The notes under the pieces were generated by a model. The model worked only from the letters and a program-made list of their open reading frames with translations. It was not told the origin of the DNA and did not search any database. Source: Obrimoposthia wandeli (lineage: Eukaryota). Taken from it: DNA of 64,000 nt. Positions 3 to 32,654 of the stretch are shown here, piece by piece (position 1 is the first letter of the stretch; every line of letters begins with the position of its first letter). The DNA is taken from NCBI GenBank assembly GCA_977020255.1, contig CDROCS010000506.1, positions 2,666,001-2,730,000 on the forward strand, written 5' to 3'. The position numbers were made by a program, and so were the translations under genes.

Positions 3-3000
3 GTGGCGAAAAAAGTCGTGCTCGACGTGATGTTGAAAACACCGGAAGTAAAAACGGGTTTGGAGATATTCAATGTAAATAATACGGTCTTTGAAAAAAT
101 TAAGCTGCTTAAACATGATGGTGGTCGAATTATTTCGGGTATTAGATCTTATGATTCGAGTGATTACACCGCTAATCTAGCAGATTATAAAGACAATGTA
201 AGTCTATTGAGAAGTCAGGTCGACAGAGTCGTGACGTCCGTCGATGCTCGGTCAGCATTGTGTGAAAGTCTTTATGAAGGCTATCGTTATTTATATGGTG
301 AAAACGTATATTTTGGTGATGATCATGGGCTTATTCCTAGTCCAAAACGAGACAAAAAAGTGGAACGTGATGGGACGTATATCACGCCGCTTGATTGGAC
401 TAGAACATGTCAAACGGAAGCCTATATTATTATTGTTACCGCAGGATATAAGGAGACAGATCATGACTCGAACAGATTTATTACTTGTCAAAATCATGAT
501 GGTGAAGCAAATTCAAAAATAGACGCTTTAACGCAAGAGTTAGCTATAGCTCAGCCAAACTTAAAGTTGCTTGCAGATTCGGATTATAGATCATTATCTG
601 ATACCGCACATGCGGCAAGGACGGTTGAAACCGAAATGAAGTCTAAGTTTGGTTTCTTATCGGACTGTACTATCGAGAATAAATTACCGCAATTGGCACA
701 TTATCTCTATAACAATGACATGAATGGTGATGATAGTGACGGCAATCAGCACATTGCTACATATACTGTTGGCGTTAATGTTGAGAATGGCAGTAAAGCC
801 TTGTTAGAAAAAACGGCCACATCGGGTGGCGGTGAGTTTTTCAATGCTGAAACGGCTACGGAGTTAAGAGAAAAACTTAAATTAGCGTTGGGTGATATCG
901 TTGCTAGGCAGAAGACTACTACTGCGACAGTGACGACATCAATAAATTCGAATAATTCGACACAAAGTGATAAGACTGTTTATTTTACAATGTTTGAGCC
1001 CGCTCAAAGTAGTAAATGGAACGGCAATTTAAAAAAATTGGTGATTGAAAATGGTGTGTTAAATGCGTGGAACATGCAAGCAAGTTTAGCGACAAGCACT
1101 AATTTGACTCCTGCACTTTCATCTACAAACGGTGCCTTTTTCGCAGATGGACTGTATTCAGGATGGAGTAATTCACCCGGACTTGATTCAGTGGAGGTTG
1201 GTGGCGTCGTCGAAGCATTCAATAGCCGAGATGTGTCTATACCACGAAAAGTATACGTAAATAACGGTAATGACAGTATTTTATGCGAGGTCACTCTGGA
1301 TAATTTGAAAGTAGTGTTAGGGATAAGTACGGGTGCGTGTATCAATTCAGATAGTGCTTCTCCACCGTCTACATCACCTGATTCTGAAGATGTTATCGAA
1401 GCTCAAAACATCGCTTTAGCAGCGCAGTTAGATGTTGATGTTGAAGCTTTATCTGCAACAGTGAAGTGGCTTAATGGTTTGAATGATACTGGAACTGCAT
1501 TCAGGGATGATATTTTCGGTGATCCTATGCACTCTGCACCACTCGTTGTTAAATATGATGATGTTTCTCGGATCTTCATTGGAACCAACGCTGGATTTTT
1601 CCATGCGTTTAAAGATAATGGCAATACTGTTGAAGAAGAGTGGGCTTTTATTCCCGCAGACTTACTCAAGAGTGCAATATCACTACGTTATGATTCTACA
1701 ATAACAGATCGTGTTTATGGTGTTGATAGTACTGCTGTTGATGCGGAGTATGGTGATTCAAAACATATCATTACCTTTGGTCTTAGGAGGGGCGGCAGTG
1801 CTTATTACTCCTTTAATGTTGATAAGGGGCTTATATCTGGTTCGGCAGAGAAGCCCACGCTTCACTGGATTATGAAGAATACCGGCACTGGTGATTTTGC
1901 AAGTTTAGGTCAAACATGGTCAATACCAATAGTCACTAAAATCTATAGAGGGTTTGAGAATGAATTGAATTCAAACCCGGTTCTGATTTTTGGAGGTGGA
2001 TATGATGTTGGCAAAGACAATTGTGGCATAAATGGTAGTTCAGAATGCGATGATACCCTTGGCCGCAGTATTTATATTATCGATATTAAAGATAAGTCAG
2101 TTATCAGTTCATTTGTTTTCACTGGAGAGTGTGATGATGCCAAGTGGGATTGTATTACTGATAGTATCGCGGGTAAATTATCTGTGCTTGATAGTGATGG
2201 CGATGGATATTCAGACCGTATTTATGCTGCCGATACTGGTGGTAATATTTATCGTATCGACACACCCAATACTTATTCAGATAATGATCAGAGAACAGTC
2301 GATACTGAAGGATGGTCATTAAGGTTAATTGCTCAACTGGGAAGTAAAAAGATTGGAACTTCTGATCGCCGTTTCTTCACTGAGCCGTCGATTGTTAGAG
2401 CTGTAAATCAAAATAGACGAGCTTACGATGGACTGCTAATAGGCAGTGGAGATATTAGCCATCCTAATTCGAATAAAGTTACAGAAGATTATATGTTCAA
2501 TATTAAGGATCTTGATTTAACGCCTGTAGTATGGGTAGCAAGTGATGAGGTCGACTCGTCAACTTATTCTGTTGCTGCAAAAGCGCGTAAACAGCCTATC
2601 CAATTTAATGATCTGACTCTTATTGATGATTCTAAAATCACAGTTACAACTGATTCAAATGATAATGGTTGGGCTTATACACTATCGAAAGACAAAGGTC
2701 AGAAAATTTTAGGTAATGCGGTCGTTATCGATGGGGTTGTTAATTTTAACAGTTATAGTCCATTTAGTAGTACGGTAGTTGTTAATAATGGGTCGGAGTG
2801 TTTACTCGCGCAAACGGGAAATAGTCATTTTTATCAAGTGAATTTAAATACAGGTAAACTTAAAACGTATAAAAAATTAGAAAACGTTATCGCTAAAGAA
2901 CTTTCTATTCATTCCGAAATAAATAATTACAATGACCCCATATTACGATTATTAGGGGCTGGTAAAGGTGATGATTCTGCAAGCGAAGGCGGGGCTCCAT

Positions 3001-3074
3001 CAGGCACTATCGATACAGAAGTAACGCTGAGTCCACGTCCTATCTACCGTTACTTCAATGAGGCTGCCCAATGA
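3..3074 (+). CDS. pilY1: Type IV pilus tip adhesin PilY1/PilC family (probably 5'-truncated by window)
   Basis: PilY1 beta-propeller motifs (FGDPMHSAP, EEEWAFIP, LGQTWSIP, FGGGYD, DSDGDGYSDRIYAAD Ca loop); overlaps pilE. Confidence 0.88.
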   Translation: MAKKVVLDVMLKTPEVKTGLEIFNVNNTVFEKIKLLKHDGGRIISGIRSYDSSDYTANLADYKDNVSLLRSQVDRVVTSVDARSALCESLYEGYRYLYGENVYFGDDHGLIPSPKRDKKVERDGTYITPLDWTRTCQTEAYIIIVTAGYKETDHDSNRFITCQNHDGEANSKIDALTQELAIAQPNLKLLADSDYRSLSDTAHAARTVETEMKSKFGFLSDCTIENKLPQLAHYLYNNDMNGDDSDGNQHIATYTVGVNVENGSKALLEKTATSGGGEFFNAETATELREKLKLALGDIVARQKTTTATVTTSINSNNSTQSDKTVYFTMFEPAQSSKWNGNLKKLVIENGVLNAWNMQASLATSTNLTPALSSTNGAFFADGLYSGWSNSPGLDSVEVGGVVEAFNSRDVSIPRKVYVNNGNDSILCEVTLDNLKVVLGISTGACINSDSASPPSTSPDSEDVIEAQNIALAAQLDVDVEALSATVKWLNGLNDTGTAFRDDIFGDPMHSAPLVVKYDDVSRIFIGTNAGFFHAFKDNGNTVEEEWAFIPADLLKSAISLRYDSTITDRVYGVDSTAVDAEYGDSKHIITFGLRRGGSAYYSFNVDKGLISGSAEKPTLHWIMKNTGTGDFASLGQTWSIPIVTKIYRGFENELNSNPVLIFGGGYDVGKDNCGINGSSECDDTLGRSIYIIDIKDKSVISSFVFTGECDDAKWDCITDSIAGKLSVLDSDGDGYSDRIYAADTGGNIYRIDTPNTYSDNDQRTVDTEGWSLRLIAQLGSKKIGTSDRRFFTEPSIVRAVNQNRRAYDGLLIGSGDISHPNSNKVTEDYMFNIKDLDLTPVVWVASDEVDSSTYSVAAKARKQPIQFNDLTLIDDSKITVTTDSNDNGWAYTLSKDKGQKILGNAVVIDGVVNFNSYSPFSSTVVVNNGSECLLAQTGNSHFYQVNLNTGKLKTYKKLENVIAKELSIHSEINNYNDPILRLLGAGKGDDSASEGGAPSGTIDTEVTLSPRPIYRYFNEAAQ

Positions 3075-3505
3075 TGACAGCTAAACAAACCGGCTTTACC
3101 CTCGTCGAATTAATGATCGTCGTCGCGATTGTCGGTATTTTAGCAGGTATTGGTTATCCATCTTACAGTGCTTATATTATCGATAATAATCGTAATGATG
3201 CGAAAGCAGCCTTATATAAAGCGCAGTTATTACAAGAACAGTATTATTTAGATAATGGTCAATATGCGACGTCATTAGCCAGTGGCGCGACGGGTACATT
3301 ATCAGGTTGGAGTGATAGCAGTGACTATTATACCTTTGCATTAGATCCGAGTAGCAGTACCAGTAGTTACACACTCATTGCGACTGTTGCAGCATCAAGC
3401 TCACAAGCTACAGATTCAGATTGTGCTTCATTCACGATTGATCACTTTGGTGTGACTACCTCGTTGGATAGCACAAATACAGTGACAACTGATTGTTGGA
3501 GATAG
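3071..3505 (+). CDS. pilE: Type IV minor pilin PilE
   Basis: Prepilin motif GFTLVELMIVVAIVGIL, YPSY motif, C-terminal Cys pair; follows pilY1. Confidence 0.88.
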   Translation: MMTAKQTGFTLVELMIVVAIVGILAGIGYPSYSAYIIDNNRNDAKAALYKAQLLQEQYYLDNGQYATSLASGATGTLSGWSDSSDYYTFALDPSSSTSSYTLIATVAASSSQATDSDCASFTIDHFGVTTSLDSTNTVTTDCWR

Positions 3506-3615
3506 CAAGTTTAGTGATTTCATCGATTTAATTGCTTGTCTGATTGGCAATTTGGATTTGCTTCGGTATGCTAGAACTATATTTAGGTATGTAAATAGTT
3601 ATATTTAAGGGCTAA

Positions 3616-3966
<351 letters not shown>

Positions 3967-4214: not shown

Positions 4215-6836
4215 ATGACAATGTCTACAGCTGAGATCCGCAACGCGTTTCTTGATTATTTTGCCGAAAAAGGGCACAACAAAGGTACAAGTAGCTCACT
4301 TGTTCCTGCTAATGATCCAACTTTGTTATTTACAAATGCGGGCATGAACCAATTTAAAGATGTATTCCTTGGTGCAGAACAACGTTCATACACACGTGCA
4401 ACGACGTCTCAACGTTGTGTACGTGCTGGTGGCAAACACAATGACTTAGATAACGTAGGTTACACTGCGCGTCACCATACATTCTTTGAAATGTTAGGTA
4501 ACTTCAGCTTTGGTGATTACTTTAAAGAAGATGCGATCTTATTTGCATGGGAATTCTTAACTAAAGAATTGAAACTACCAAAAGAAAAGCTGCTTGTTAC
4601 TGTTTACGAAAGCGATGATGAAGCATTTTCATTCTGGGCTGATAAAATTGGTGTACCAGTAGACAAAATTATTCGCATCGGTGATAAGTCACCAGAGAAG
4701 AAATTTGAATCAGATAACTTCTGGTCAATGGGTGATACCGGTCCATGTGGTCCATGTTCTGAAATATTCTATGATCACGGCGAAGACATTTGGGGCGGCG
4801 TTCCGGGTTCTCCTGAAGAAGATGGCGATCGTTTCATCGAGATTTGGAACTTAGTATTCATGCAGTTCAACCGTCAAGCAGACGGCACGATGGAAGCGTT
4901 GCCAAAACCTTCTGTTGATACAGGTATGGGTCTTGAGCGTATTTCTGCAATTATGCAAAACGTACACTCAAACTATGAAATCGATATCTTCCAAAGCTTA
5001 ATCAAACACGTTGCTGAGCTTATCGGTACGACTGATTTAGAAAACAAATCACTACGCGTAATTGCCGATCACATTCGTGCATGTAGCTTCCTGATCTCTG
5101 ACGGCGTTATGCCATCAAATGAAGGTCGTGGTTATGTACTACGTCGTATTATTCGTCGTGCAGTACGTCACGGTAATAAACTTGGCGCTAAAGGCCCATT
5201 CTTCAACAAACTTGTTGCTAAGATGGTTGAGCTGATGGGCGATATTTCTGACGATTTAGTAAAACAACAAGCGATTGTTGAAAAAATCTTACTTATCGAA
5301 GAAGAACAGTTTGGTAAAACGCTAGAGCGTGGTCTGAACATTCTAGACAACGAACTGTCACAACTAGAAGGGACTGTTGTTCCTGGTGATGTGGTATTCA
5401 AACTGTATGACACTTATGGTTTCCCATCAGATTTAACCGCTGACATCGCGCGTGAACGTGAGTTAACGATTGATGAAGACGGCTTTAAAGTTGCGATGGA
5501 AGAACAGCGTAATCGTGCTCGCCAAGGTTCTAACTTTGGTACTGACTACAACGATATGTTGAAAATCGATGCAAACACTGAATTCTTAGGTTATCAAACG
5601 CTGACATCTGATGCGCAAATTGTGGCATTAATCAGAGACAACGCTGAAGTTGAGATCTTAAATGACGGTCAAGCAGGCGCGATTGTTTTAAATAAAACAC
5701 CATTTTACGCAGAAGCGGGTGGCCAATCTGGTGACCAAGGTGTGATCAAAATTGGTGACGCGGTATTTACTGTTACTGATACCAAGAAAGCGGGCAACGC
5801 AGTTGTTCATTTTGGTACTGTTTCGGGTGTTATCGAAGTTAATAACCAAGTTATTGCAGACGTTGACGTTAGTCGCCGTAAAGCGATTGGCCTTAACCAC
5901 TCTGTAACTCACTTAGCACACGCAGCGTTACGTAAAGTTGTTGGTGAAAATGTACAACAGAAAGGTTCATTAGTATTACCTGAACGTTTACGTTTCGATT
6001 TCTCACACTTTGAAGGTGTAACCCCAGCGCAACTGCTTGAAGTTGAACGTCTGGTTAATGCGCAAATTCGTGCAAACCACGAAGTTGTCACTGAAGTGAT
6101 GGATATTGATGCTGCGCGTGAAGCGGGCGCAATGGCATTATTCGGTGAGAAGTACGATGACGAAGTGCGCGTAGTACGTATGGGTGACTTCTCAATCGAA
6201 TTATGTGGTGGTACGCATGTTAAACGTACCGGTGACATTGGTTTCTTCAAGATCTTATCTGAGAGCGGTATCGCAGCTGGCGTACGTCGTGTTGAAGCGG
6301 TAACTGGTGACTCTGCATTGGCATATGTGCATGACCTTGTAGCTAAAATGCAAGAAACTGCAGGTTTAGTGAAAGCGGATCAAAATACATTAGCAGCGAA
6401 AGTTGGCCAAGTATTAGACCGTAATCGTAGCCTAGAAAAAGAAGTTGAAAAGTTAAACGTACAAGTAGCAAGTGCTGCGAATGCTAACTTGATCGACCAG
6501 GTACAAGTGATTAATGGTGTTAAAGTACTTGTTGCTAACCTTAAGGGTGCAGATCCTAAGTCGCTACGTAGCTCGATGGATGAACTGAAGAATAAACTGC
6601 AAAGCGGTATTATTGTTCTGGGTATTCCAGGCGAAGGTAAAGTTAACTTAATCACTGGTGTGACTAAAGACTTAATCGGTAAAGTGAAAGCGGGCGAGCT
6701 AGTAAGCTTCCTTGCTGTTCAGGTTGGCGGTAAAGGCGGTGGTCGTCCAGATATGGCACAAGCGGGTGGTTCAAACCCTGAAGCGCTTGCAGCGGCTCTT
6801 GAGTCTGTGACGCCTTGGTTAACTGAAAAACTATAA
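4215..6836 (+). CDS. alaS: Alanine--tRNA ligase
   Basis: [54 protein letters not shown]. Confidence 0.99.
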
Positions 6837-8347: not shown

Positions 8348-8539
8348 ATGCTAATATTGACACGCCGAGTTGGCGAAACACTTATGATTGGTGATGAAGT
8401 TACAGTTACCGTTCTAGGTGTTAAAGGGAATCAAGTTCGTATCGGTGTTAATGCGCCTAAAGAAGTATCTGTTCATCGTGAAGAGATCTACATGCGAATT
8501 CAAGCAGAAAAAGGCGAAAGCCCTGAAGGCAACTTCTAA
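8348..8539 (+). CDS. csrA: Carbon storage regulator CsrA
   Basis: [48 protein letters not shown]. Confidence 0.99.
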
Positions 8540-8743: not shown

Positions 8744-8806
8744 GGAGAGGTGGCCGAGTGGCCGAAGGCGCTCCCCTGCTAAGGGAGTATGGGCTTTAAA
8801 TCCCAT

Positions 8807-8835
<29 letters not shown>
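8744..8835 (+). tRNA. tRNA-Ser(GCT)
   Basis: Cloverleaf with long variable arm, anticodon loop CT-GCT-AA, encoded CCA. Confidence 0.96.
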
Positions 8836-8837
<2 letters not shown>

Positions 8838-8920
8838 GTTGTCCTGTTCCTATTACATATTGAAAAATGTGTTATAGTGTTTGGGTCGGCTTTTTGGACG
8901 TTGTAAGAAATAATTGTTGT

Positions 8921-8997
8921 GCGGACGTAGCTCAGCTGGATAGAGTACCTGGCTACGAACCAGGCGGTCGGAGGTTCGAATCCTTCCGTCCGCACCA
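8921..8997 (+). tRNA. tRNA-Arg(ACG) copy 1
   Basis: GCGGACG/CGTCCGC acceptor stem, CT-ACG-AA loop, CCA; 77 nt. Confidence 0.96.
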
Positions 8998-9087
8998 TTA
9001 TTTCGATTAGAATTAATTCTAAGTAATTAGTAGAAGTTGAAAACGCTTAATCTAATTATAAAAAATTATAGGTTAGACCAAATATGT

Positions 9088-9164
9088 GCGGACGTAGCTC
9101 AGCTGGATAGAGTACTTGGCTACGAACCAGGCGGTCGAAGGTTCGAATCCTTCCGTCCGCACCA
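9088..9164 (+). tRNA. tRNA-Arg(ACG) copy 2
   Basis: Same cloverleaf, ACG anticodon. Confidence 0.96.
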
Positions 9165-9234
9165 TTGGTTTTAACAACGAATACTTATTAAGTAAACTGT
9201 CATGTTTACTCGATAAAAACAGAATAAATTATGT

Positions 9235-9311
9235 GCGGACGTAGCTCAGCTGGATAGAGTACTTGGCTACGAACCAGGCGGTCGAAGGTTCGAATCCTTC
9301 CGTCCGCACCA
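9235..9311 (+). tRNA. tRNA-Arg(ACG) copy 3
   Basis: Same cloverleaf, ACG anticodon. Confidence 0.96.
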
Positions 9312-9402
9312 TTTATTCAAATCAACTAGAGATTTAAAACTAGACGTTGAAGAACGATAAACTATAAGTTGTAGAACTATAAACTAATAGAATAAATTAT
9401 GT

Positions 9403-9479
9403 GCGGATGTAGCTCAGCTGGATAGAGTACCTGGCTACGAACCAGGCGGTCGGAGGTTCGACTCCTCCCATCCGCACCA
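9403..9479 (+). tRNA. tRNA-Arg(ACG) copy 4
   Basis: Variant with compensated acceptor stem GCGGATG/CATCCGC. Confidence 0.96.
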
Positions 9480-9560
9480 TTTATTCAAACCACAATTTGA
9501 TTTTTATGGTTTAATTCGTTAAACGGTAAAAATAAAACAAGTTCTTAAAATAGAATATGT

Positions 9561-9637
9561 GCGGACGTAGCTCAGCTGGATAGAGTACTTGGCTACGAAC
9601 CAGGCGGTCGAAGGTTCGAATCCTTCCGTCCGCACCA
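9561..9637 (+). tRNA. tRNA-Arg(ACG) copy 5
   Basis: Same cloverleaf, ACG anticodon. Confidence 0.96.
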
Positions 9638-9661
9638 TCTATTTTAAATATAATTTTTTGT

Positions 9662-9738
9662 GCGGACGTAGCTCAGCTGGATAGAGTACCTGGCTACGAA
9701 CCAGGCGGTCGGAGGTTCGACTCCTCCCGTCCGCACCA
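9662..9738 (+). tRNA. tRNA-Arg(ACG) copy 6
   Basis: Same cloverleaf, ACG anticodon. Confidence 0.96.
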
Positions 9739-9812
9739 TTATTATATTATTATGAATTGTCCAATGTAAGTCTTTACATTGTCGAGGTTATTCGTAATAA
9801 TAGGGTTTGTGT

Positions 9813-9904
9813 GGAGAGGTGGCCGAGTGGCCGAAGGCGCTCCCCTGCTAAGGGAGTATGGGCTTTAAATCCCATCGAGAGTTCGAATCTCTCCCTCTCC
9901 GCCA
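9813..9904 (+). tRNA. tRNA-Ser(GCT) second copy
   Basis: As first copy, with compensatory T-stem change (GAGAG/CTCTC vs GAGGG/CCCTC). Confidence 0.96.
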
Positions 9905-24747: not shown

Positions 24748-26433
24748 ATGTATACTGAGTTTTTTCATTTAAAAGAAATGCCGTTTTCTATTGCCCCAGA
24801 TCCCCGTTTCTTTTTTATGAGTGACAGGCATAAAGAAGCGCTGACACACCTGACCTATGGGTTACAAGGTGCTGGTGGTTTTATCATGTTAACGGGGGAA
24901 GTCGGTACCGGTAAAACTACGGTGTCACGCGCCTTAATACAAGAACTCACGACAACGACTGTAGTGGGGTATATTCATAATCCAGCGGTCAGTGAATTAG
25001 AATTATTAGCGACCTTATGTGATGAATTTAAGCTTGATTATGATAAGCATAATTTGAGCTTAAAAATGCTGTTTGATCTGTTGCATCATTATTTATTAGC
25101 TAATTGCCAGCAAGATAGATCGTGCGTAGTGATCATCGATGAGGCGCAGCTATTATCTACAGCAGCTTTAGAGCAGTTACGCTTACTAACGAACCTCGAT
25201 GTTAACCATAAAAAACTACTCCATATCGTCCTGATTGGTCAGCCTGAATTACAGCAAAAACTAAAACAACCAGAGTTACGTCAGTTGGCTCAGCGTATTA
25301 CCGCCCGTTATCATTTACTGCCGCTAACAGAATTAGAATTGGCGAGTTATGTCGCTTATCGGTTAAGTATTGCCTCGGGTAATCCGGGCTTGTTTAGTAG
25401 CAAGATATTAAAACGTATTCATCAGCATACCGAAGGGGTGCCGCGGTTAGTGAACTTGGTTTGTGATAAAGCCCTGTATTATGCGTTTAAGACACGGGAA
25501 GACAAAATCACCCCGCAACATGTTTTAGCTGCAGTGAAAGCAGTCGCGATTTCAACGCCAGTGAAAGCTAAAAAAACAGCGCCAGCTATGGCGGTACTTG
25601 CGGTCATATTATGCCTAGGTGGGGCTATAACGGCCTTTCAATTAGGCTTGTTAGATCAGACTAAAGATAATATAGCAGCTGTTCAGCATGGTGAAGCAAC
25701 GTCTATTATCTCCCCTGTTGTCATCTCGACGGAAGCCGTAAGTAGCAGTACTGGGGAAGTCGCTAGTGATACATTGGATCCGTTAGCGGCTAGTAATGAA
25801 GTGATGACGGACAAAGCGCTCTCTACAGACATCAAATCTGCTCGACAGGATAATGCCGCTACACAATTCTTATTTAAGGAATGGGGTTACGATATTACGT
25901 TGGAAGATGCGAGTTGTCGTAATGCCCAATATGCTAAGTTACGTTGTTTACAGCGTCAGGGAAATTATGCGCAGTTGGTGCAATACAACTTACCAGGTGT
26001 TGTTCGCCTGTTAGATAATTTAGGCGAAGCCTATTACGCGACATTACTGAGTATTACGCCATTAGGTGTGGAACTGCAACTCAGCAATAGCCATTTACTG
26101 GTAAGCCAAGCTTGGTTTGAAAAAAATTGGACTGGCGATTTCACTTTGTTTTGGACTGCACCAAGCAGGTTTAAAAAGAGTTTAAAACAAAATGATAAAG
26201 GTGAGTTAATTCGTTGGTTAGATATAAACATTAGTGCTGTACTTGGTGATGATGCGATATCAGGAACGCAATTTGACTGGCCATTAATGCAAAAAGTAAT
26301 GCGCTTTCAACAGCAGTCTGGCCTAACTGCAGATGGCATTGTTGGCCCACAAACGATGATGACGATAGTGCATTATGCTGATAGCACAGTGCCTAAATTG
26401 AATGTGGCGACACATATAGCGGAGGCAAAATGA
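24748..26433 (+). CDS. exeA: T2SS accessory ATPase ExeA/GspA with peptidoglycan-binding C-terminus
   Basis: GEVGTGKT, IIDEAQ, GQPEL, C-terminal DGIVGPQT. Confidence 0.9.
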   Translation: MYTEFFHLKEMPFSIAPDPRFFFMSDRHKEALTHLTYGLQGAGGFIMLTGEVGTGKTTVSRALIQELTTTTVVGYIHNPAVSELELLATLCDEFKLDYDKHNLSLKMLFDLLHHYLLANCQQDRSCVVIIDEAQLLSTAALEQLRLLTNLDVNHKKLLHIVLIGQPELQQKLKQPELRQLAQRITARYHLLPLTELELASYVAYRLSIASGNPGLFSSKILKRIHQHTEGVPRLVNLVCDKALYYAFKTREDKITPQHVLAAVKAVAISTPVKAKKTAPAMAVLAVILCLGGAITAFQLGLLDQTKDNIAAVQHGEATSIISPVVISTEAVSSSTGEVASDTLDPLAASNEVMTDKALSTDIKSARQDNAATQFLFKEWGYDITLEDASCRNAQYAKLRCLQRQGNYAQLVQYNLPGVVRLLDNLGEAYYATLLSITPLGVELQLSNSHLLVSQAWFEKNWTGDFTLFWTAPSRFKKSLKQNDKGELIRWLDINISAVLGDDAISGTQFDWPLMQKVMRFQQQSGLTADGIVGPQTMMTIVHYADSTVPKLNVATHIAEAK

Positions 26434-27113
26434 AATTTATAAACGCTAAAGCATCATGCTTATTTAGAACTGGTTTAGTTGTTAGTACATTATGCAGCCC
26501 TGTTTTATTTGTCAGCAGCGTATTTGCTAATACCGCTATTTCAGCAGGCGTGCAACAAACGGACCCGCTGACTATTTTAAAGTTAGCAGATATTGAATTT
26601 AAGCATCCATTATCAGTGGTAGCGGTACCGACACAGCAGCTAGTCCCGATATATACGGCTAAGCAACCTGAGATGAAAGTGATATCGAGTAGCAAGGCTA
26701 AGCCTGATTATAGCTCTGAGCAATTGGATATGAATGAGCAATTGACCATGAATGATGAATTAGCGCATGAGCAAGTGTCTGCAGAGTTACTGGCTAAGTT
26801 TAATCGTGCGCTAACAGCGACAAGTGATGAGGATAATGTGCCTGCTAATGAGGTGCCAGAGAGTTATAATGCTGTGCCTATTGCAGACTTACCGACGCAT
26901 TTACGTATGCAAATTCCAGATATCAGTTATAGCTCACATGTGTATTCCTCGAAAGCGAACAATCGCAGCGTGCGTTTAAATAATCGAGATTTACGCGAAG
27001 GCAGTTGGTTAAGTGATGATGTAGAGATCTTGGAAATATTACAAAATGAGGTGATTATGCGTGTCGGCGCGCAAAGCTTCAGTCTCAAAGCGCTCTCTGA
27101 TTGGTCTGCATAA
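26430..27113 (+). CDS. exeB: T2SS accessory protein ExeB/GspB
   Basis: Overlaps exeA; C-terminal SSHVYSS...LNNRDLREG. Confidence 0.8.
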   Translation: MKFINAKASCLFRTGLVVSTLCSPVLFVSSVFANTAISAGVQQTDPLTILKLADIEFKHPLSVVAVPTQQLVPIYTAKQPEMKVISSSKAKPDYSSEQLDMNEQLTMNDELAHEQVSAELLAKFNRALTATSDEDNVPANEVPESYNAVPIADLPTHLRMQIPDISYSSHVYSSKANNRSVRLNNRDLREGSWLSDDVEILEILQNEVIMRVGAQSFSLKALSDWSA

Positions 27114-27181: not shown

Positions 27182-28213
27182 CTACTGCTTCGCTAATTTA
27201 TTAATCACATCATTTGCTTCAGACATTATACGTTCGACGATCACGGCTACGCTGGGTACATCGTTGATCAACCCCTGCGATTGACCAATAAACTGTACAC
27301 CTGTTGTCAGGTCACCCTTGATCGTAGCAGCTTCTAATTTCTCTGTAGCAGCACCAAAATAAGACAGTTGCTTGATCTTGTCGAACTGGACAAACACACC
27401 AGCAACCAATTTCCAAAATGGTAAATCAACCATTTTAGCGGCCTTTACCGATTTGAATAATGCCAGTGCAAAATTCATTGGTTTTTTAGTCGCTTTAATA
27501 GAAGCGGGCGTTTTTAGGACGCGAGCATAAAGACCATCAAAGTTCTTAGAGTAGATAGTATCGTTTTCTGATTTACCGGTAATGACTTGCTTAACATCAT
27601 TATGTAGTGCGCTTTCTTGGCTGGTGGCAAAACGAGAACCCATTGCGACACCTTCAGCGCCAAGTGCTAACGCTGCGGCAAGACCACGACCATCAGCAAA
27701 ACCACCAGTTGCGATCACGGGAATATCAACTGCGCTGGCAATCGCAGGTACAAGCACTAATGAGGTTACATCACCACCGTGTGCTGCAGCCTCATGGCCT
27801 GTTACCATCAATGCATCAGCACCTATCGATTGCGCTGACTTAGCGTGTTTTTCATTGACGACAGTGGCGATGACTTTACCGCCATAAGCGTGAACCTGTT
27901 CGACAATCCAGTCACCTTTACCTAATGAAAAGTTAATCACAGGTACTTGTTCTTCTATACCTACTTTGGCATTTTCTTTTGCACCTGGCATCAGCAGTGT
28001 TGCGCCAATACCAAAGGGTTTATCGGTGAGTTCACGGATCTTTCTAATTGAAGCGCGGGTTTCTTCTTGGCTTAACGGCCCTGTTGCTAGAATGCCTAGT
28101 CCGCCAGCATTGGAAACTGCGGCAACAAGCTCTGGTTTTGATATCCAGCTCATTCCAGGCAAGACGATAGGGTGCTCAATGCCTAATAATTCTGTAATCC
28201 GTGTTTTCATCAC
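27182..28213 (-). CDS. Nitronate monooxygenase/FabK-like flavin oxidoreductase
   Basis: AVSNAGGLG, GHEAAAHG, ATGGFADGRGLAAALALGAEGVAMGSRF. Confidence 0.85.
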   Translation of the reverse strand: MMKTRITELLGIEHPIVLPGMSWISKPELVAAVSNAGGLGILATGPLSQEETRASIRKIRELTDKPFGIGATLLMPGAKENAKVGIEEQVPVINFSLGKGDWIVEQVHAYGGKVIATVVNEKHAKSAQSIGADALMVTGHEAAAHGGDVTSLVLVPAIASAVDIPVIATGGFADGRGLAAALALGAEGVAMGSRFATSQESALHNDVKQVITGKSENDTIYSKNFDGLYARVLKTPASIKATKKPMNFALALFKSVKAAKMVDLPFWKLVAGVFVQFDKIKQLSYFGAATEKLEAATIKGDLTTGVQFIGQSQGLINDVPSVAVIVERIMSEANDVINKLAKQ

Positions 28214-28401
28214 TTTATTCCAAATGCAAAAAGATTAGAAAATAAATTAGCACAAATACACTAGAACGCATAGATGTTAATAGTATGTTTGTTTTTAACA
28301 AAATTATTTACTGTAAAATTTTAACCATTACAACTTTAGTTTGGGTATATTCTGTGTATTTTCAATGCACAATATAATCGACTGGGTAGGCCATTTTTAG
28401 C

Positions 28402-28522
28402 GTGTAAGACATCGACTATTGAGGTGTCGGGATATTGTCATTACGTGAGTGTGTTTATATCGGTGTTATGTCTAGTCTTACACTCGTAAAAAGAAGTTAA
28501 GTATTTATTTATCAATGGCTTA
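28402..28522 (+). promoter_or_regulatory. GacA/UvrY-type half-sites and IHF site upstream of the CsrB-like RNA
   Basis: GTGTAAGAC (28402-28410) and its inverse GTCTTACAC (28475-28483); TATCAATGGCTTA (28510-28522) matches IHF WATCAANNNNTTR. Confidence 0.55.
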
Positions 28523-28652
28523 GTGTTTTGTGGCGTTTATCTCTTGTAAATAAATGTAATTTAATCGTTTTTAGTCGCTTGTTGCTTAGCGTTAATCACG
28601 TATATTTATAAGCACAAGGACGAGGCGGGAACATCTTCAGGAAGAAGATTAA

Positions 28653-29460
28653 AGGATTAAGTTGCAGGATGCGACAAAAGGACATCTTCAGGAAGAAGAC
28701 AAAGGATTAAGTTGCAGGATGCGACACAAGGAACATCTTCAGGAAGAAGACAAAGGATTAAGTTGCAGGATGCAGCACAGGACATCTTCAGGAAGAAGAC
28801 AAAGGATTAAGTTGCAGGATGCAGCACAGGACATCTTCAGGAAGAAGACAAAGGATTAAGTTGCAGGATGCAGCACAGGACATCTTCAGGAAGAAGACCA
28901 AAGGATTAAGTTGCAGGATGCAGCACAGGACATCTTCAGGAAGAAGACAAAGGATTAAGTTGCAGGATGCAGCACAGGACATCTTCAGGACGAAGAGTAA
29001 AGGATTAAGTTGCAGGATGCAGCACAGGACATCTTCAGGACGAAGAACAAAGGATTAAGTTGCAGGATGCAGCACAGGACATCTTCAGGACGAAGAACAA
29101 AGGATTAAGTTGCAGGATGCAGCACAGGACATCTTCAGGACGAAGAACAAAGGATTAAGTTGCAGGATGCAGCACAGGACATCTTCAGGACGAAGAACAA
29201 AGGATTAAGTTGCAGGATGCAGCACAGGACATCTTCAGGACGAAGAACAAAGGATTAAGTTGCAGGATGCAGCACAGGACATCTTCAGGACGAAGAACAA
29301 AGGATTAAGTTGCAGGATGCAGCACAGGACATCTTCAGGACGAAGAACAAAGGATTAAGTTGCAGGACGCGACAAAAGGACATCTTCAGGAAGAAGACAA
29401 AGGATTAAGTTGCAGGACGCGACACAAGGACAGCTTCAGGAAGAAGACCAAAGGATTGCG
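28653..29460 (+). repeat. Tandem array of 16 full ~50-bp units plus a partial 17th
   Basis: Consensus AGGATTAAGTTGCAGGATGCAGCACAGGACATCTTCAGGACGAAGAACAA; period 49-51 bp, no unique spacers. Confidence 0.97.
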
Positions 29461-29619
29461 TTACAGGATGTAACATAGAAATAAATCAGGATCGATTTAT
29501 TGTGCTAGGAAGGCAAAAGGACACTCCGACGGATTGGGAAGTGGAAATTTAACGGAATAAATAGAGTCAGGATTTAGCAGGGTTGCTACGCGTTTCATGG
29601 ATTGAGATATATAGACTTT

Positions 29620-29646
29620 AGGGCGGCACATTGTGCCGCCTTTTCT
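29620..29646 (+). terminator. Terminator of the CsrB-like RNA
   Basis: GGCGGCAC/GTGCCGCC followed by TTTT. Confidence 0.85.
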
Positions 29647-29775
29647 ATATCTGCGATTTAATAAATCACATTTGGCTTTCCACCTGCACACTCTTCTATT
29701 ACACCTTTCTACTACATGCCTTCATTTCATATGTTTTATATTTAAAAATCATTAGGCGCTTCAACATAATTATTG

Positions 29776-29940
29776 TTATACCAATTCCGAAAACTAAGTG
29801 ATCAAAATAATATTACTCCTGCAAACCGCTCAAGACATCCCTGTTAGCTTAGACAAGGCCATCCATGGCATGTCTATTTGCGATAGGTTTGCGATAGCAA
29901 TAGCATTTTTCTGTACAGTTATTTATAGGAATTGGTATTA
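29776..29940. mobile_element. Possible MITE-like or structured element (159 bp)
   Basis: 10-bp terminal inverted repeat TACCAATTCC/GGAATTGGTA flanked by TTA on both sides; nested internal pairings. Confidence 0.3.
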
Positions 29941-29984
29941 TCCCAGCTTGCTTCATCACTATTTAGATGTAAAAAAGTAGATGC

Positions 29985-30015
29985 AAAAAAAGGCGCTAAA
30001 TAAATTTAGCGCCTT
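29985..30015 (-). terminator. srmB terminator
   Basis: AAGGCGCTAAA/TTTAGCGCCTT with T run on minus strand. Confidence 0.85.
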
Positions 30016-30057
30016 GATGATTAATCATAATTTAAGTTATTACTTGATAACGATTAA

Positions 30058-31317
30058 TTATTTCTTCTTATTCTTCTTAGTACGTTTTTTAGCTTTCAGT
30101 TTCGCTTTTGCAGATACTTTATTCTTACCTGTTGCTGCTACTTTCGCTTTTTTCTTCGTTTTCGATACCGCAATTTTATTCTTTGGTTTCAATTCTTGAA
30201 TTACACGACGTTTAATCGTTTCTTCAGTGTAACGTTCAATTTTACCAAAGATACGTAGATCATGCGCTTCAACCAATGAAATCGCTGTACCTTTCTTACC
30301 GGCACGTGCAGTACGGCCAATACGGTGAACATAAATTTCAGCACTACGTGGTAAATCAAAGTTAAATACATGGCTTACATCTTGTACATCAATACCGCGA
30401 GCGGCGACGTCAGTAGCGACAAGTACTTTTACTTTATCATTTTTAAATTGATTCAGTGAGCGAGTACGTTTTGCTTGGTCCATTTCACCACGTAAATAAG
30501 CACACGGGATCTCTTGAGACTGTAAATAGCTTACTAGTTCAGCTAGACGTTCACGGGTTTTTACAAACACGATAGAACGAGTAGTGCTTTCGTCACGTAA
30601 CCAATGTACTAACAAAGCTTGTTTGTGTGCGTGATTATCAACATAGTGCATGAATTGATGAATCTTAGCTTTTTCTCTACGTGAAGGATTAGCTGTAAAT
30701 TCAGCAGGCTCTTTCAATAGTTCTTCAGCAAAACGCTCAATACCACGGCCTTCTAGGGTCGCAGAAAATAGCATTGTTTGTTGACGACGTGTCATTTCTT
30801 CAGTGATTTTTTTCACGTCATCATAGAAACCCATATCTAACATACGGTCAGCTTCATCTAAAATAAGTACTTCAACAGCAGCACATTCAAATGCATCACG
30901 ACGGATATATTCTAATAAACGACCTGGTGTTGCGATAACAATATCAAGGCTGTTTTTTAAAACTTCAGCGTGTAATGCATAATCCACACCACCCGTTATC
31001 ATTGATACTTTATGGTCAGTATAGGCTGCTAGCATTTTAGCTTGCTGGAATACCTGACTTGCGAGTTCTCGCGTTGGCGTCAAGATAAGTACGCGTCCAG
31101 GGCCTAATTCACGACGTGGAAAGTCAATCAGATGCTGAAAAGCTGGTAATAAAAACGCCAGCGTTTTACCTGTACCTGTCGGTGCAGATGCAAGGATATC
31201 TCTACCATCCATGGCAGTTGGCAATACTTGTTGTTGAATCATTGTTGGTTGAACAAGATTATTGTCAGTAAGTGCGACTATTAATTGATGGTCTAGATCG
31301 AGACTTTCGAAGTCCAT
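30058..31317 (-). CDS. srmB: DEAD-box RNA helicase SrmB
   Basis: APTGTGKT, PTRELA, DEADRMLDMGF, SAT, HRIGRTARAG, basic tail; near trmN6. Confidence 0.95.
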   Translation of the reverse strand: MDFESLDLDHQLIVALTDNNLVQPTMIQQQVLPTAMDGRDILASAPTGTGKTLAFLLPAFQHLIDFPRRELGPGRVLILTPTRELASQVFQQAKMLAAYTDHKVSMITGGVDYALHAEVLKNSLDIVIATPGRLLEYIRRDAFECAAVEVLILDEADRMLDMGFYDDVKKITEEMTRRQQTMLFSATLEGRGIERFAEELLKEPAEFTANPSRREKAKIHQFMHYVDNHAHKQALLVHWLRDESTTRSIVFVKTRERLAELVSYLQSQEIPCAYLRGEMDQAKRTRSLNQFKNDKVKVLVATDVAARGIDVQDVSHVFNFDLPRSAEIYVHRIGRTARAGKKGTAISLVEAHDLRIFGKIERYTEETIKRRVIQELKPKNKIAVSKTKKKAKVAATGKNKVSAKAKLKAKKRTKKNKKK

Positions 31318-31691: not shown

Positions 31692-32654
31692 ATGAGCTTA
31701 CGTGCTTTATTGCCCACTGCAAGATGGTCTTTCGTGATATTACTACTGTCTTTCGCTACATCGATTTATGCCGAAGATAAGTATTATTCCGATAACGAGG
31801 GTAAGATATCTAATGACGGTTACTGGGGATCAAAGCGCGGTCATGTTGGTGGTGAAGAAAAACGTAAACCAACACCGCCAGCGTCAGTTCCAGAAGAACC
31901 TGAATTTGAAGCACTTGAATTTACAAGACCGATCTATTCTAAACTCAGTTTTGGATTGCAGCTAAACAGTAATTATGATGATTACTCGCGTCACGGCAGT
32001 TCACTGGCGAATAATCCCGGCTTGGACTATGTAGTAGATAATGTTTTTACCGAAGATTTAGTATGGCAAGCAAATATTGATTACAAAAATGACGATATTC
32101 TTATATCTAATGGCATAGGTATTTTGCCTGAAGATAGTCTTATTGGTATTGGCGTTAATGCTTTTTGGGACATGGAAGTTGATTCTGGTGAGCAACGTTT
32201 ATCTGTCGGTACTAAGTATGATGACCCAGATTATATCTTTAATCTTTCATCGAATATCTATTTTCCAGTGTCGGGTAAAGATGAAGCAGATGATCTGGTA
32301 AATAGCATGGATATTCGGGCTGAGGGAGCTATTACGCCGACGTTACAATTCCATAGTTCGTTTGAGTACTTTTTTGGGGATAATATCCAAATTAATGATG
32401 ATTACGACCCCTCCGATAATAGCCATAAATTTACTGCAGGTTTGGATTATACCCCGATACCGTTATTGCAATTTGGTGTTGAAGCAACAAAAGTAAAAGA
32501 GCATGACGTAGGTTATGGGGTGTACCTCTATTTCAATTACGATCCATGGCGTCCACTAAATGAACAGTTAGAACTGATTTTGGATAATGATTTTTCTATG
32601 CACGAAATGATCCCATTCTCACGTTCAACCGTGCTATCTCGTACAGCCGAGTAA
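31692..32654 (+). CDS. Inverse autotransporter (invasin/intimin-type) beta-barrel domain protein without passenger
   Basis: Signal peptide; GVNAFWD, SSNIYFP, GLDYTPIPLL, PWRPLNEQL resemble invasin beta-domain motifs. Confidence 0.75.
   Translation: MSLRALLPTARWSFVILLLSFATSIYAEDKYYSDNEGKISNDGYWGSKRGHVGGEEKRKPTPPASVPEEPEFEALEFTRPIYSKLSFGLQLNSNYDDYSRHGSSLANNPGLDYVVDNVFTEDLVWQANIDYKNDDILISNGIGILPEDSLIGIGVNAFWDMEVDSGEQRLSVGTKYDDPDYIFNLSSNIYFPVSGKDEADDLVNSMDIRAEGAITPTLQFHSSFEYFFGDNIQINDDYDPSDNSHKFTAGLDYTPIPLLQFGVEATKVKEHDVGYGVYLYFNYDPWRPLNEQLELILDNDFSMHEMIPFSRSTVLSRTAE

Follow-up and report, generated by a model that had tools for sequence, protein, structure and literature searches.

Csr/Rsm sponge RNAs are textbook global regulators, and their capacity is viewed as being set by gene number and by transcription rate. 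The window analysed here, which is the whole stretch of DNA at its full length of 64 kb, contains between two protein-coding genes a region of about 1 kb that is crowded with GGA motifs. This raises the question of whether the region is a single sponge RNA gene, to which family it belongs, and whether its unusual size can be trusted. As set out below, the locus is very probably the csrB gene of a Moritella strain, a decoy RNA of the CsrB/RsmB family encoded on the plus strand from about 28613 to about 29646, in which the core module has been amplified to 17 copies. The parts of the locus are as follows.

27182-28213, minus strand: fabK-like FMN oxidoreductase gene, flanking gene
28613-28630, plus strand: 5' leader (CACAAGGACG..GG.GGA) with 2 GGA, conserved in all relatives; predicted start at about 28613
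28631-29479, plus strand: unit array, 17 units with 67 GGA (from TRF, unit anchoring and RF00018 alignment)
29480-29619, plus strand: unique 3' tail with 9 GGA, aligning with the 3' part of RF00018 and kept in relatives
29620-29646, plus strand: Rho-independent terminator found by scanning, with a 10-bp GC-rich stem and 3-nt loop (29620-29642) and a T run
30058-31317, minus strand: srmB, flanking gene

GGA content and anatomy of the array

Between 28613 and 29646 the plus strand carries 78 GGA motifs, against a single TCC (a GGA on the minus strand). The background across the window is a mean of 7.3 GGA per 1034 nt, the highest value outside the locus is 19, and a GGA scan found no second GGA-dense region in the 64 kb. 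Almost all of the motifs (72 of the 78) stand in an AGGA context, and in the RNA they are spaced 11-14 nt apart.

TRF reports a repeat at 28631-29470 with a period of 50, 16.8 copies and 94% matches. With unit borders set by anchoring on CTTCAGGA, the array resolves into 17 units of 49-51 nt, each with four GGA apart from the last, which has three. There are nine sequence variants among the units, and six identical units stand consecutively (~300 bp). The subtypes are ordered, with A-loop units (AGGAA, seven units) followed by C-loop units (AGGAC, eight units, including the six identical ones) and more diverged units at both edges of the array.

An earlier reading of this DNA, made from the sequence only, had also counted 78 GGA motifs, a total that our recount over the same interval bears out. 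It had divided them as 3 in a leader, 64 in 16 exact tandem units and 11 in a tail; the tandem array stands, but in the register used here there are 17 units and the division is 2, 67 and 9. Since the units range from 49 to 51 nt and fall into nine variants, calling the module exact was an overstatement. The GGA hairpins that it named are present, as are the TATATT -10 at 28601-28606 and the GC hairpin with T run at 29620-29646. Its description of the region as free of ORFs does not hold literally, as mechanical ORFs of 42-79 aa occur on both strands of the array; a Pfam search with these ORFs gave no significant match.

Such ORFs, together with those of 58-135 aa called in relatives, could suggest that the array is a coding repeat, or else a repeat that acts as DNA (a protein-binding or CRISPR-like array), and not an RNA gene. 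The probability of this is close to negligible. The mixture of 49-, 50- and 51-nt units breaks every reading frame, variable spacers are absent, and GGA is distributed over the two strands with extreme asymmetry (78 to 1). Moreover, the region shows compensatory changes at the RNA level, a match to RF00018, and RNA abundance far above that of the neighbouring genes, all of which argue for an RNA gene.

Relationship to the CsrB/RsmB family

The RF00018 (CsrB/RsmB) covariance model matches the locus in three places with 85.9, 81.3 and 76.8 bits, in each case above the gathering score of 71; an Infernal-type search with a CsrB model was the check that the sequence-only reading had put forward. 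That reading had also placed csrA some 20 kb from the array, and the gene was indeed found upstream at that distance.

28666-28940, 28963-29239 and 29313-29650, plus strand: non-overlapping matches to the RF00018 covariance model
8348-8539, plus strand: csrA, 63 aa (Pfam CsrA PF02599, 90.4 bits, 6.8e-26)

Of these matches, the first two cover the array side by side and pass over the terminator segment of the model (52 model positions against 6-7 bases); in the third, the 3' end of the model is aligned with the unique tail, the UGGAUUG hairpin and the terminator. A unit corresponds to approximately positions 70-118 of the RF00018 consensus, which comprise the CUUCAGGAUGAAG hairpin, aaaGGAU, the CAGGAUG hairpin and AAGGACA. 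Since the unit matches the core of the family consensus, the array consists of amplified copies of the family core rather than of a GGA repeat unrelated to it. The model likewise detects the orthologous loci in six relatives, with 72.9-91.4 bits.

Annotation would list the three non-overlapping matches separately, and they might be understood as three tandem csrB genes in place of one long RNA, an arrangement for which there are genuine two-gene precedents in the Moritella genomes CP056120 and CP056121. However, the genes of those pairs each carry a promoter, leader, tail and terminator, whereas the intergenic region of the window has a single conserved promoter (ACGTATATTT) and a single terminator. 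The first two matches bypass the terminator segment of the model, and a site scan found no promoter-like or terminator-like sites inside the array. Three genes are therefore very improbable, and we treat the locus as one gene.

The csrA gene stands in its usual cluster context, preceded by alaS and an aspartokinase gene and followed by a cluster of tRNA genes. Eight tRNA genes are predicted by Rfam at 8744-9901, directly downstream of csrA, two of them long-arm tRNAs of 89 nt.

Structure and covariation of the repeat unit

A single unit folds into two hairpins with GGA in their loops (-10.2 kcal/mol, z = -2.9). From 5' to 3', hairpin 1 (CUUC-AGGAN-GAAG) is followed by an unpaired AAAGGAUUA, then by hairpin 2 (GUUGC-AGGAY-GCRRC) and finally by an unpaired ACA(A)GGACA. 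The tail adds the hairpin AUAAAUC-AGGAUC-GAUUUAU, and the UGGAUUG hairpin immediately before the terminator. Across the RNA, 42 of the 78 GGA are flanked by complementary arms of at least 4 bp, and in partition-function folds the mean unpaired probability is 0.86-0.89 for GGA, compared with 0.40-0.43 elsewhere.

An alignment of 38 different units, drawn from seven sources, was used to look for support for this structure. Pairing at hairpin 2 is preserved in 98.9% of its cells, with 15 doubly changed cells (GC to AU in 10 and CG to UA in 5), and none of 500 shuffles attained the observed covariation score. Slid registers of hairpin 2 all scored far lower. In the unit of GCA_052426985.1, three of the five pairs of hairpin 2 have been rebuilt, giving GUCAU/AUGAC in place of GUUGC/GCAGC. 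Covariation is silent on hairpin 1 because its four core pairs never vary.

When several units are folded together, pairing can also form between the hairpin 2 arms of adjacent units, in competition with the local hairpins; this inter-unit pairing is predicted to leave the GGA in a 3x3 internal loop. The structure described here is read from unit-level folds and covariation. A minimum free energy fold of the whole RNA was dropped as a model because its long-range pairings between units are interchangeable when the units are identical.

Promoter, terminator and upstream elements

Comparison of the region upstream of the array with the orthologous loci described below identified the following features.

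28579-28584 and 28601-28606, plus strand: promoter, from conservation, with a -35-like TTGTTG, a 16-nt spacer and the -10 TATATT
28543-28565, plus strand: AT-rich block CTTGTAAAT..ATGTAATTTAAT (about -70 to -48), kept in the promoters of core Moritella
28473-28482, plus strand: TAGTCTTACA, inverted partner of TGTAAGAC 64 nt downstream of it, in seven of nine promoters (core Moritella only)
28403-28419, plus strand: upstream element TGTAAGA-N-ATCGAC-N-AT, at about -210 to -194, from an alignment of nine promoters

Conservation at the orthologous loci extends to the promoter, leader, tail and terminator, and GCTTGTTG of the -35 region and ACGTATATTT of the -10 are kept in all relatives compared. 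The promoter was not called by a consensus scanner because its -35 matches at just 3/6 positions. In M. marina the terminator stem carries a compensatory change from G-C to A-U.

GacA/UvrY regulons are recognised by an upstream activating sequence, an 18-bp palindrome of the type TGTAAG-N6-CTTACA. The upstream element of the window is invariant in nine Moritella-type csrB promoters save for two variable positions, and within it TGTAAGACATCGAC represents the left half plus the centre of such a palindrome at about -200; the right half is non-palindromic. The TGTAAGAC half-site (28403-28410) is present in all nine promoters, and its partner half-site GTCTTACA, at 28475-28482, is 64 nt away rather than adjoining. 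This arrangement could be a split box, two half-sites or the result of an insertion. The element shares AGACATC and a TGTAAG-type half with the putative GacA box of Pf1 of Pseudoalteromonas fuliginea, CGTGAGACATCTCTTACA (PMC9927453). Control of csrB by GacA/UvrY from this candidate site is plausible.

RNA abundance at the locus

For two DNA runs and two metatranscriptomes (X15 and X16), Logan contigs were aligned over 27200-31300. These are strandless k-mer contigs in which the array is collapsed, and the RNA may stem from related strains. Word depth within the array is inflated by repetition, from which the unique tail is free.

Coverage of the upstream spacer is normal in the DNA runs, with a depth of 25-68, and both RNA runs have a depth of 0 over 28296-28569. 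RNA depth is 1650-3940 in the bin 28570-28706, where the predicted start lies, and hundreds to thousands through the array. In the unique tail it is 590 (X15) and 260 (X16), compared with 5-61 in the fabK-like gene and srmB, so that the tail stands at 10-55 times the neighbouring genes in the two metatranscriptomes. Beyond 29665 the depth in X16 is 0, and X15 has one contig that continues to 29834. An adapter-joined contig end falls at 28624, 11 nt from the predicted start. These strandless contigs, in which the array is collapsed, are consistent with an RNA of high abundance whose limits are the predicted promoter and terminator. A single RNA molecule would span the whole ~1 kb.

A primary transcript of 1 kb might instead be cut quickly, for example by RNase E, with fragments of one or a few units serving as the working CsrA decoys. 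In Pectobacterium, processing shortens RsmB from 479 nt to ~259 nt; CsrB is turned over by RNase E, and each unit has AU-rich single-stranded linkers that are possible cleavage sites. The data show no sign of processing, at a resolution of contigs that is too coarse to resolve cleavage, and we consider such fragments improbable as the working form.

The original proposal that the locus is a CsrA sponge is supported by the RF00018 matches, by GGA motifs placed in covarying loops and in predicted linkers, by the presence of csrA, by the conserved promoter and terminator, and by the bounded RNA depth.

Orthologous loci and copy number in Moritella

Judged by the genes beside csrB, the window belongs to Moritella: the fabK-like protein shares 97% identity with its homologue in Moritella sp. 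JT01, and the protein cluster of SrmB consists of Moritella species. Relatives were found through protein searches and the members of protein clusters. A scan of genome contigs with an SrmB peptide pattern returned generic DEAD-box helicases with no close relative among the matches listed, the best of which (L001, 54%) has no csrB beside srmB, and an exact-protein look-up of the SrmB of the window gave no record. A 75% match to the fabK-like protein (P0008) was rejected as an orthologous locus, as it is not syntenic.

Five complete Moritella genomes have the same order of fabK-like gene, csrB and srmB. With gene borders taken as the conserved promoter and terminator, csrB in these genomes spans 387-850 nt with 4-13 units and 27-62 GGA, and two of the five have tandem pairs. 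The loci are listed here beside that of the window and a further tandem pair from a metagenome.

This window: one csrB gene, 17 units, 1034 nt, 78 GGA
M. viscosa LN554852: one csrB gene, 11 units, 749 nt, 55 GGA
M. marina CP044399: one csrB gene, 10 units, ~690 nt, 53 GGA (counted over the whole spacer)
Moritella sp. 24 CP056123: one csrB gene, 13 units, 850 nt, 62 GGA
Moritella sp. CP056120: two tandem csrB genes, 4 + 8 units, 387 + 593 nt, 27 + 43 GGA
Moritella sp. CP056121: two tandem csrB genes, 9 + 8 units, 643 + 593 nt, 47 + 43 GGA
JGI metagenome contig L096: two tandem csrB genes, 9 + 5 units, 643 + 439 nt, 47 + 31 GGA

It can be seen that the csrB of the window is the largest single csrB gene among the loci compared. 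The tandem genes (CP056120, locus L094 5767-7817; CP056121, locus L095 5767-8073; L096) each have their own promoter, leader, array, tail and terminator. The flanks of CP056120 and CP056121 are 99.7-99.9% identical, and their first csrB genes differ by an indel of 256 nt that amounts to exactly five units. Because these strains are nearly identical, the indel indicates that unit number shifts on the time scale of strain divergence. The loci compared thus bear out variation in copy number, but they lend no support to a regulated adjustment of it.

Two further lineages were compared. In the first, a deeper branch (SrmB 89%; ENA metagenome scaffolds L100-L102, ~5870-6180), the orthologue is only 313 nt long with 18 GGA and ~1.5 units, yet it keeps the Moritella-type promoter, leader, tail and terminator; it scores below the gathering score of RF00018 though it is clearly homologous. 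The second, GCA_052426985.1 (contig JBNOXG011045135.1, L099 5770-6287; SrmB 84%), has at least six copies of its own 50-nt unit, with 36 GGA in the 518 nt up to the end of the contig, which falls inside the array. Here a separate version of the unit, with the hairpin 2 stem GUCAU/AUGAC, has been amplified. Taken across these sequences, an expanded csrB of variable copy number is a trait of the genus Moritella and not a one-off.

How far the count of 17 can be relied upon is a separate matter, as the array could be real and its size (17 units, 1034 nt, 78 GGA) an assembly error, whether over- or under-expanded, with the truth nearer to 4-13 units. The block of six identical units (~300 bp) is beyond the resolution of short reads. 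Short-read contigs of JT01, of M. viscosa and M. marina drafts, and of Logan assemblies end within the first or last units, and the contigs of the DNA runs at the locus of the window itself break at 28641, none of them spanning the array. Logan depth was rejected as an estimate of copy number: at the array the contigs are collapsed or interrupted, every run has a depth of 0 over the block of six identical units, and depth does not equal copy number. On the other hand, the sequence of the window is continuous through the array, which has ordered unit subtypes and is not a featureless stack, and 17 units lie within the range of the relatives, whose complete genomes reach 13 in one gene and 17 across two. 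We consider a wrong count unlikely and retain 17 units.

One M. viscosa draft (GCA_900120035.1, L086) has a 4-unit csrB adjoining srmB, whose upstream 300 nt are 87% identical to the promoter region of the second gene of CP056120 and 75% to the fabK-proximal one. Some M. viscosa strains may thus have two csrB genes; alternatively, the 11-unit gene of LN554852 may have arisen by fusion or represent a collapse.

In csrB arrays with a 51-nt period, 51 being a multiple of 3, public annotation includes hypothetical ORFs of 58-135 aa (L094 7188-7364, L095 7264-7620, L096 7060-7467 and L086 6122-6298). These ORFs are almost certainly spurious. Annotation based on Rfam gives one CsrB of ~340 nt at the 3' end, or several adjacent ones. 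Through the combination of short-read breaks, Rfam fragments and spurious ORFs, the true csrB gene is misdescribed in public records.

Comparison with known Csr sponges

The RNA had been proposed to have about three times the usual length and capacity, and this holds against published counts: E. coli CsrB has 22 GGA and CsrC 14, and the P. fuliginea sponges Pf1, Pf2 and Pf3 have 25, 21 and 9 (PMC11882849), while V. fischeri CsrB1 and CsrB2, of 416 and 420 nt, have 21 motifs each (PMC1488887).

Like E. coli CsrB, the RNA of the window has the RF00018 core, a 3' tail hairpin and terminator that align to the model, its own promoter and terminator, and csrA in the same genome. In contrast to the 22 GGA of the E. 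coli RNA (PMC11882849), it has 78 in ~1034 nt. The repeats of E. coli CsrB are diverged and imperfect, whereas the RNA of the window is mostly a near-perfect tandem array; its gene also differs in being flanked by the fabK-like gene and srmB, and in that its GacA/UvrY-type palindrome is not intact.

The V. fischeri RNAs and their Vibrionaceae paralogues are likewise marine and gammaproteobacterial, with AGGA/ARGGA in loops. In both groups extra copies raise capacity, as paralogues in Vibrionaceae and as tandem gene pairs in some Moritella; however, the Vibrionaceae gain capacity through gene number, and Moritella mainly through amplification of the module within the gene. Pf1-3 are also highly expressed intergenic Csr sponges of a cold-marine gammaproteobacterium, but they lack a tandem array and, by their authors' account, are confined to Pseudoalteromonas. 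RsmB of Pectobacterium/Erwinia belongs to the same Rfam family and is, to our knowledge, its longest characterised member at 479 nt; the RNA of the window is more than twice as long, and RsmB is not built of an exact tandem module.

By analogy only, the circular RNA ciRS-7/CDR1as, with more than 70 miR-7 sites, is also one RNA with dozens of repeated sites for one regulator. It is an unrelated molecule with a different partner and biogenesis, and there is no family relationship.

A model for sponge capacity

From its sequence and conservation, the locus is a genuine tandem-expanded CsrB-family gene that is polymorphic in copy number, for which we infer CsrA binding and its stoichiometry. In the model that we propose, plus-strand transcription of csrB would begin at a sigma-70-type promoter (~28613) and stop at an intrinsic terminator (~29646). 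Its ~50-nt core module, the most conserved in the family and consisting of a GGA hairpin, a single-stranded GGA, a second GGA hairpin and a second single-stranded GGA, would have been amplified to 17 copies, to give an RNA of ~1034 nt with 78 GGA, nearly all of them predicted to be exposed.

The CsrA dimer has two RNA-binding surfaces and bridges GGA sites some 10-60 nt apart. Each dimer could bridge two nearby GGA of the array, so that one to two dimers would be accommodated per 50-nt unit. One RNA molecule would then hold roughly 20-35 CsrA dimers, compared with ~9 for E. coli CsrB, and would titrate CsrA off its mRNA targets. The array would grow and shrink by unit-register recombination or by slippage, and sponge capacity per transcript would thereby differ between strains. 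Capacity per transcript would scale with the number of units, and whole-gene duplication would add more in some strains.

A more far-reaching idea, which we offer tentatively and consider rather unlikely, is that the csrB array mutates fast, as a contingency-type locus. Recombination in unit register, covering a range of 4 to 17 units together with gene duplication, would act on the time scale of strain divergence and generate heritable variants of the Csr regulon set-point within populations, and very high capacity would have been selected in the cold, deep-sea and fish-associated Moritella.

In a literature search that took in part of the journals, neither a paper connecting CsrB or CsrA with Moritella nor a description of a tandem-expanded Csr sponge came up. 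The CsrB sponge as such is known; its tandem amplification within a gene, the size reached and the copy-number polymorphism between strains appear to be undescribed. Amplification of the core binding module inside the gene would be a third route to sponge capacity. The RNA of the window is the largest CsrB-family RNA for which we found any record, with ~3.5 times as many GGA as E. coli CsrB. Together the loci form a natural allelic series of 4, 5, 8, 9, 10, 11, 13 and 17 units, plus the unexpanded 313-nt relative, which could be used to probe the effects of valency on CsrA buffering, cooperativity and RNA turnover.

Neighbouring genes

Genes for a GspA/ExeA-like ATPase with a peptidoglycan-binding domain and for a GspB/ExeB-like protein (24748-27113) adjoin the fabK-like gene. 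Both are type II secretion assembly factors, and the arrangement is kept in Moritella; the L100-L102 loci are without the fabK-like gene, and there gspB directly adjoins csrB. On the other side, 31692-32654 encodes a protein of 320 aa that consists of an inverse-autotransporter beta-barrel domain alone (intimin/invasin type), with no passenger domain. This assignment is based on weak NCBIfam matches and on Pfam IAT_beta in relatives, and the gene lies upstream of srmB in all Moritella loci.
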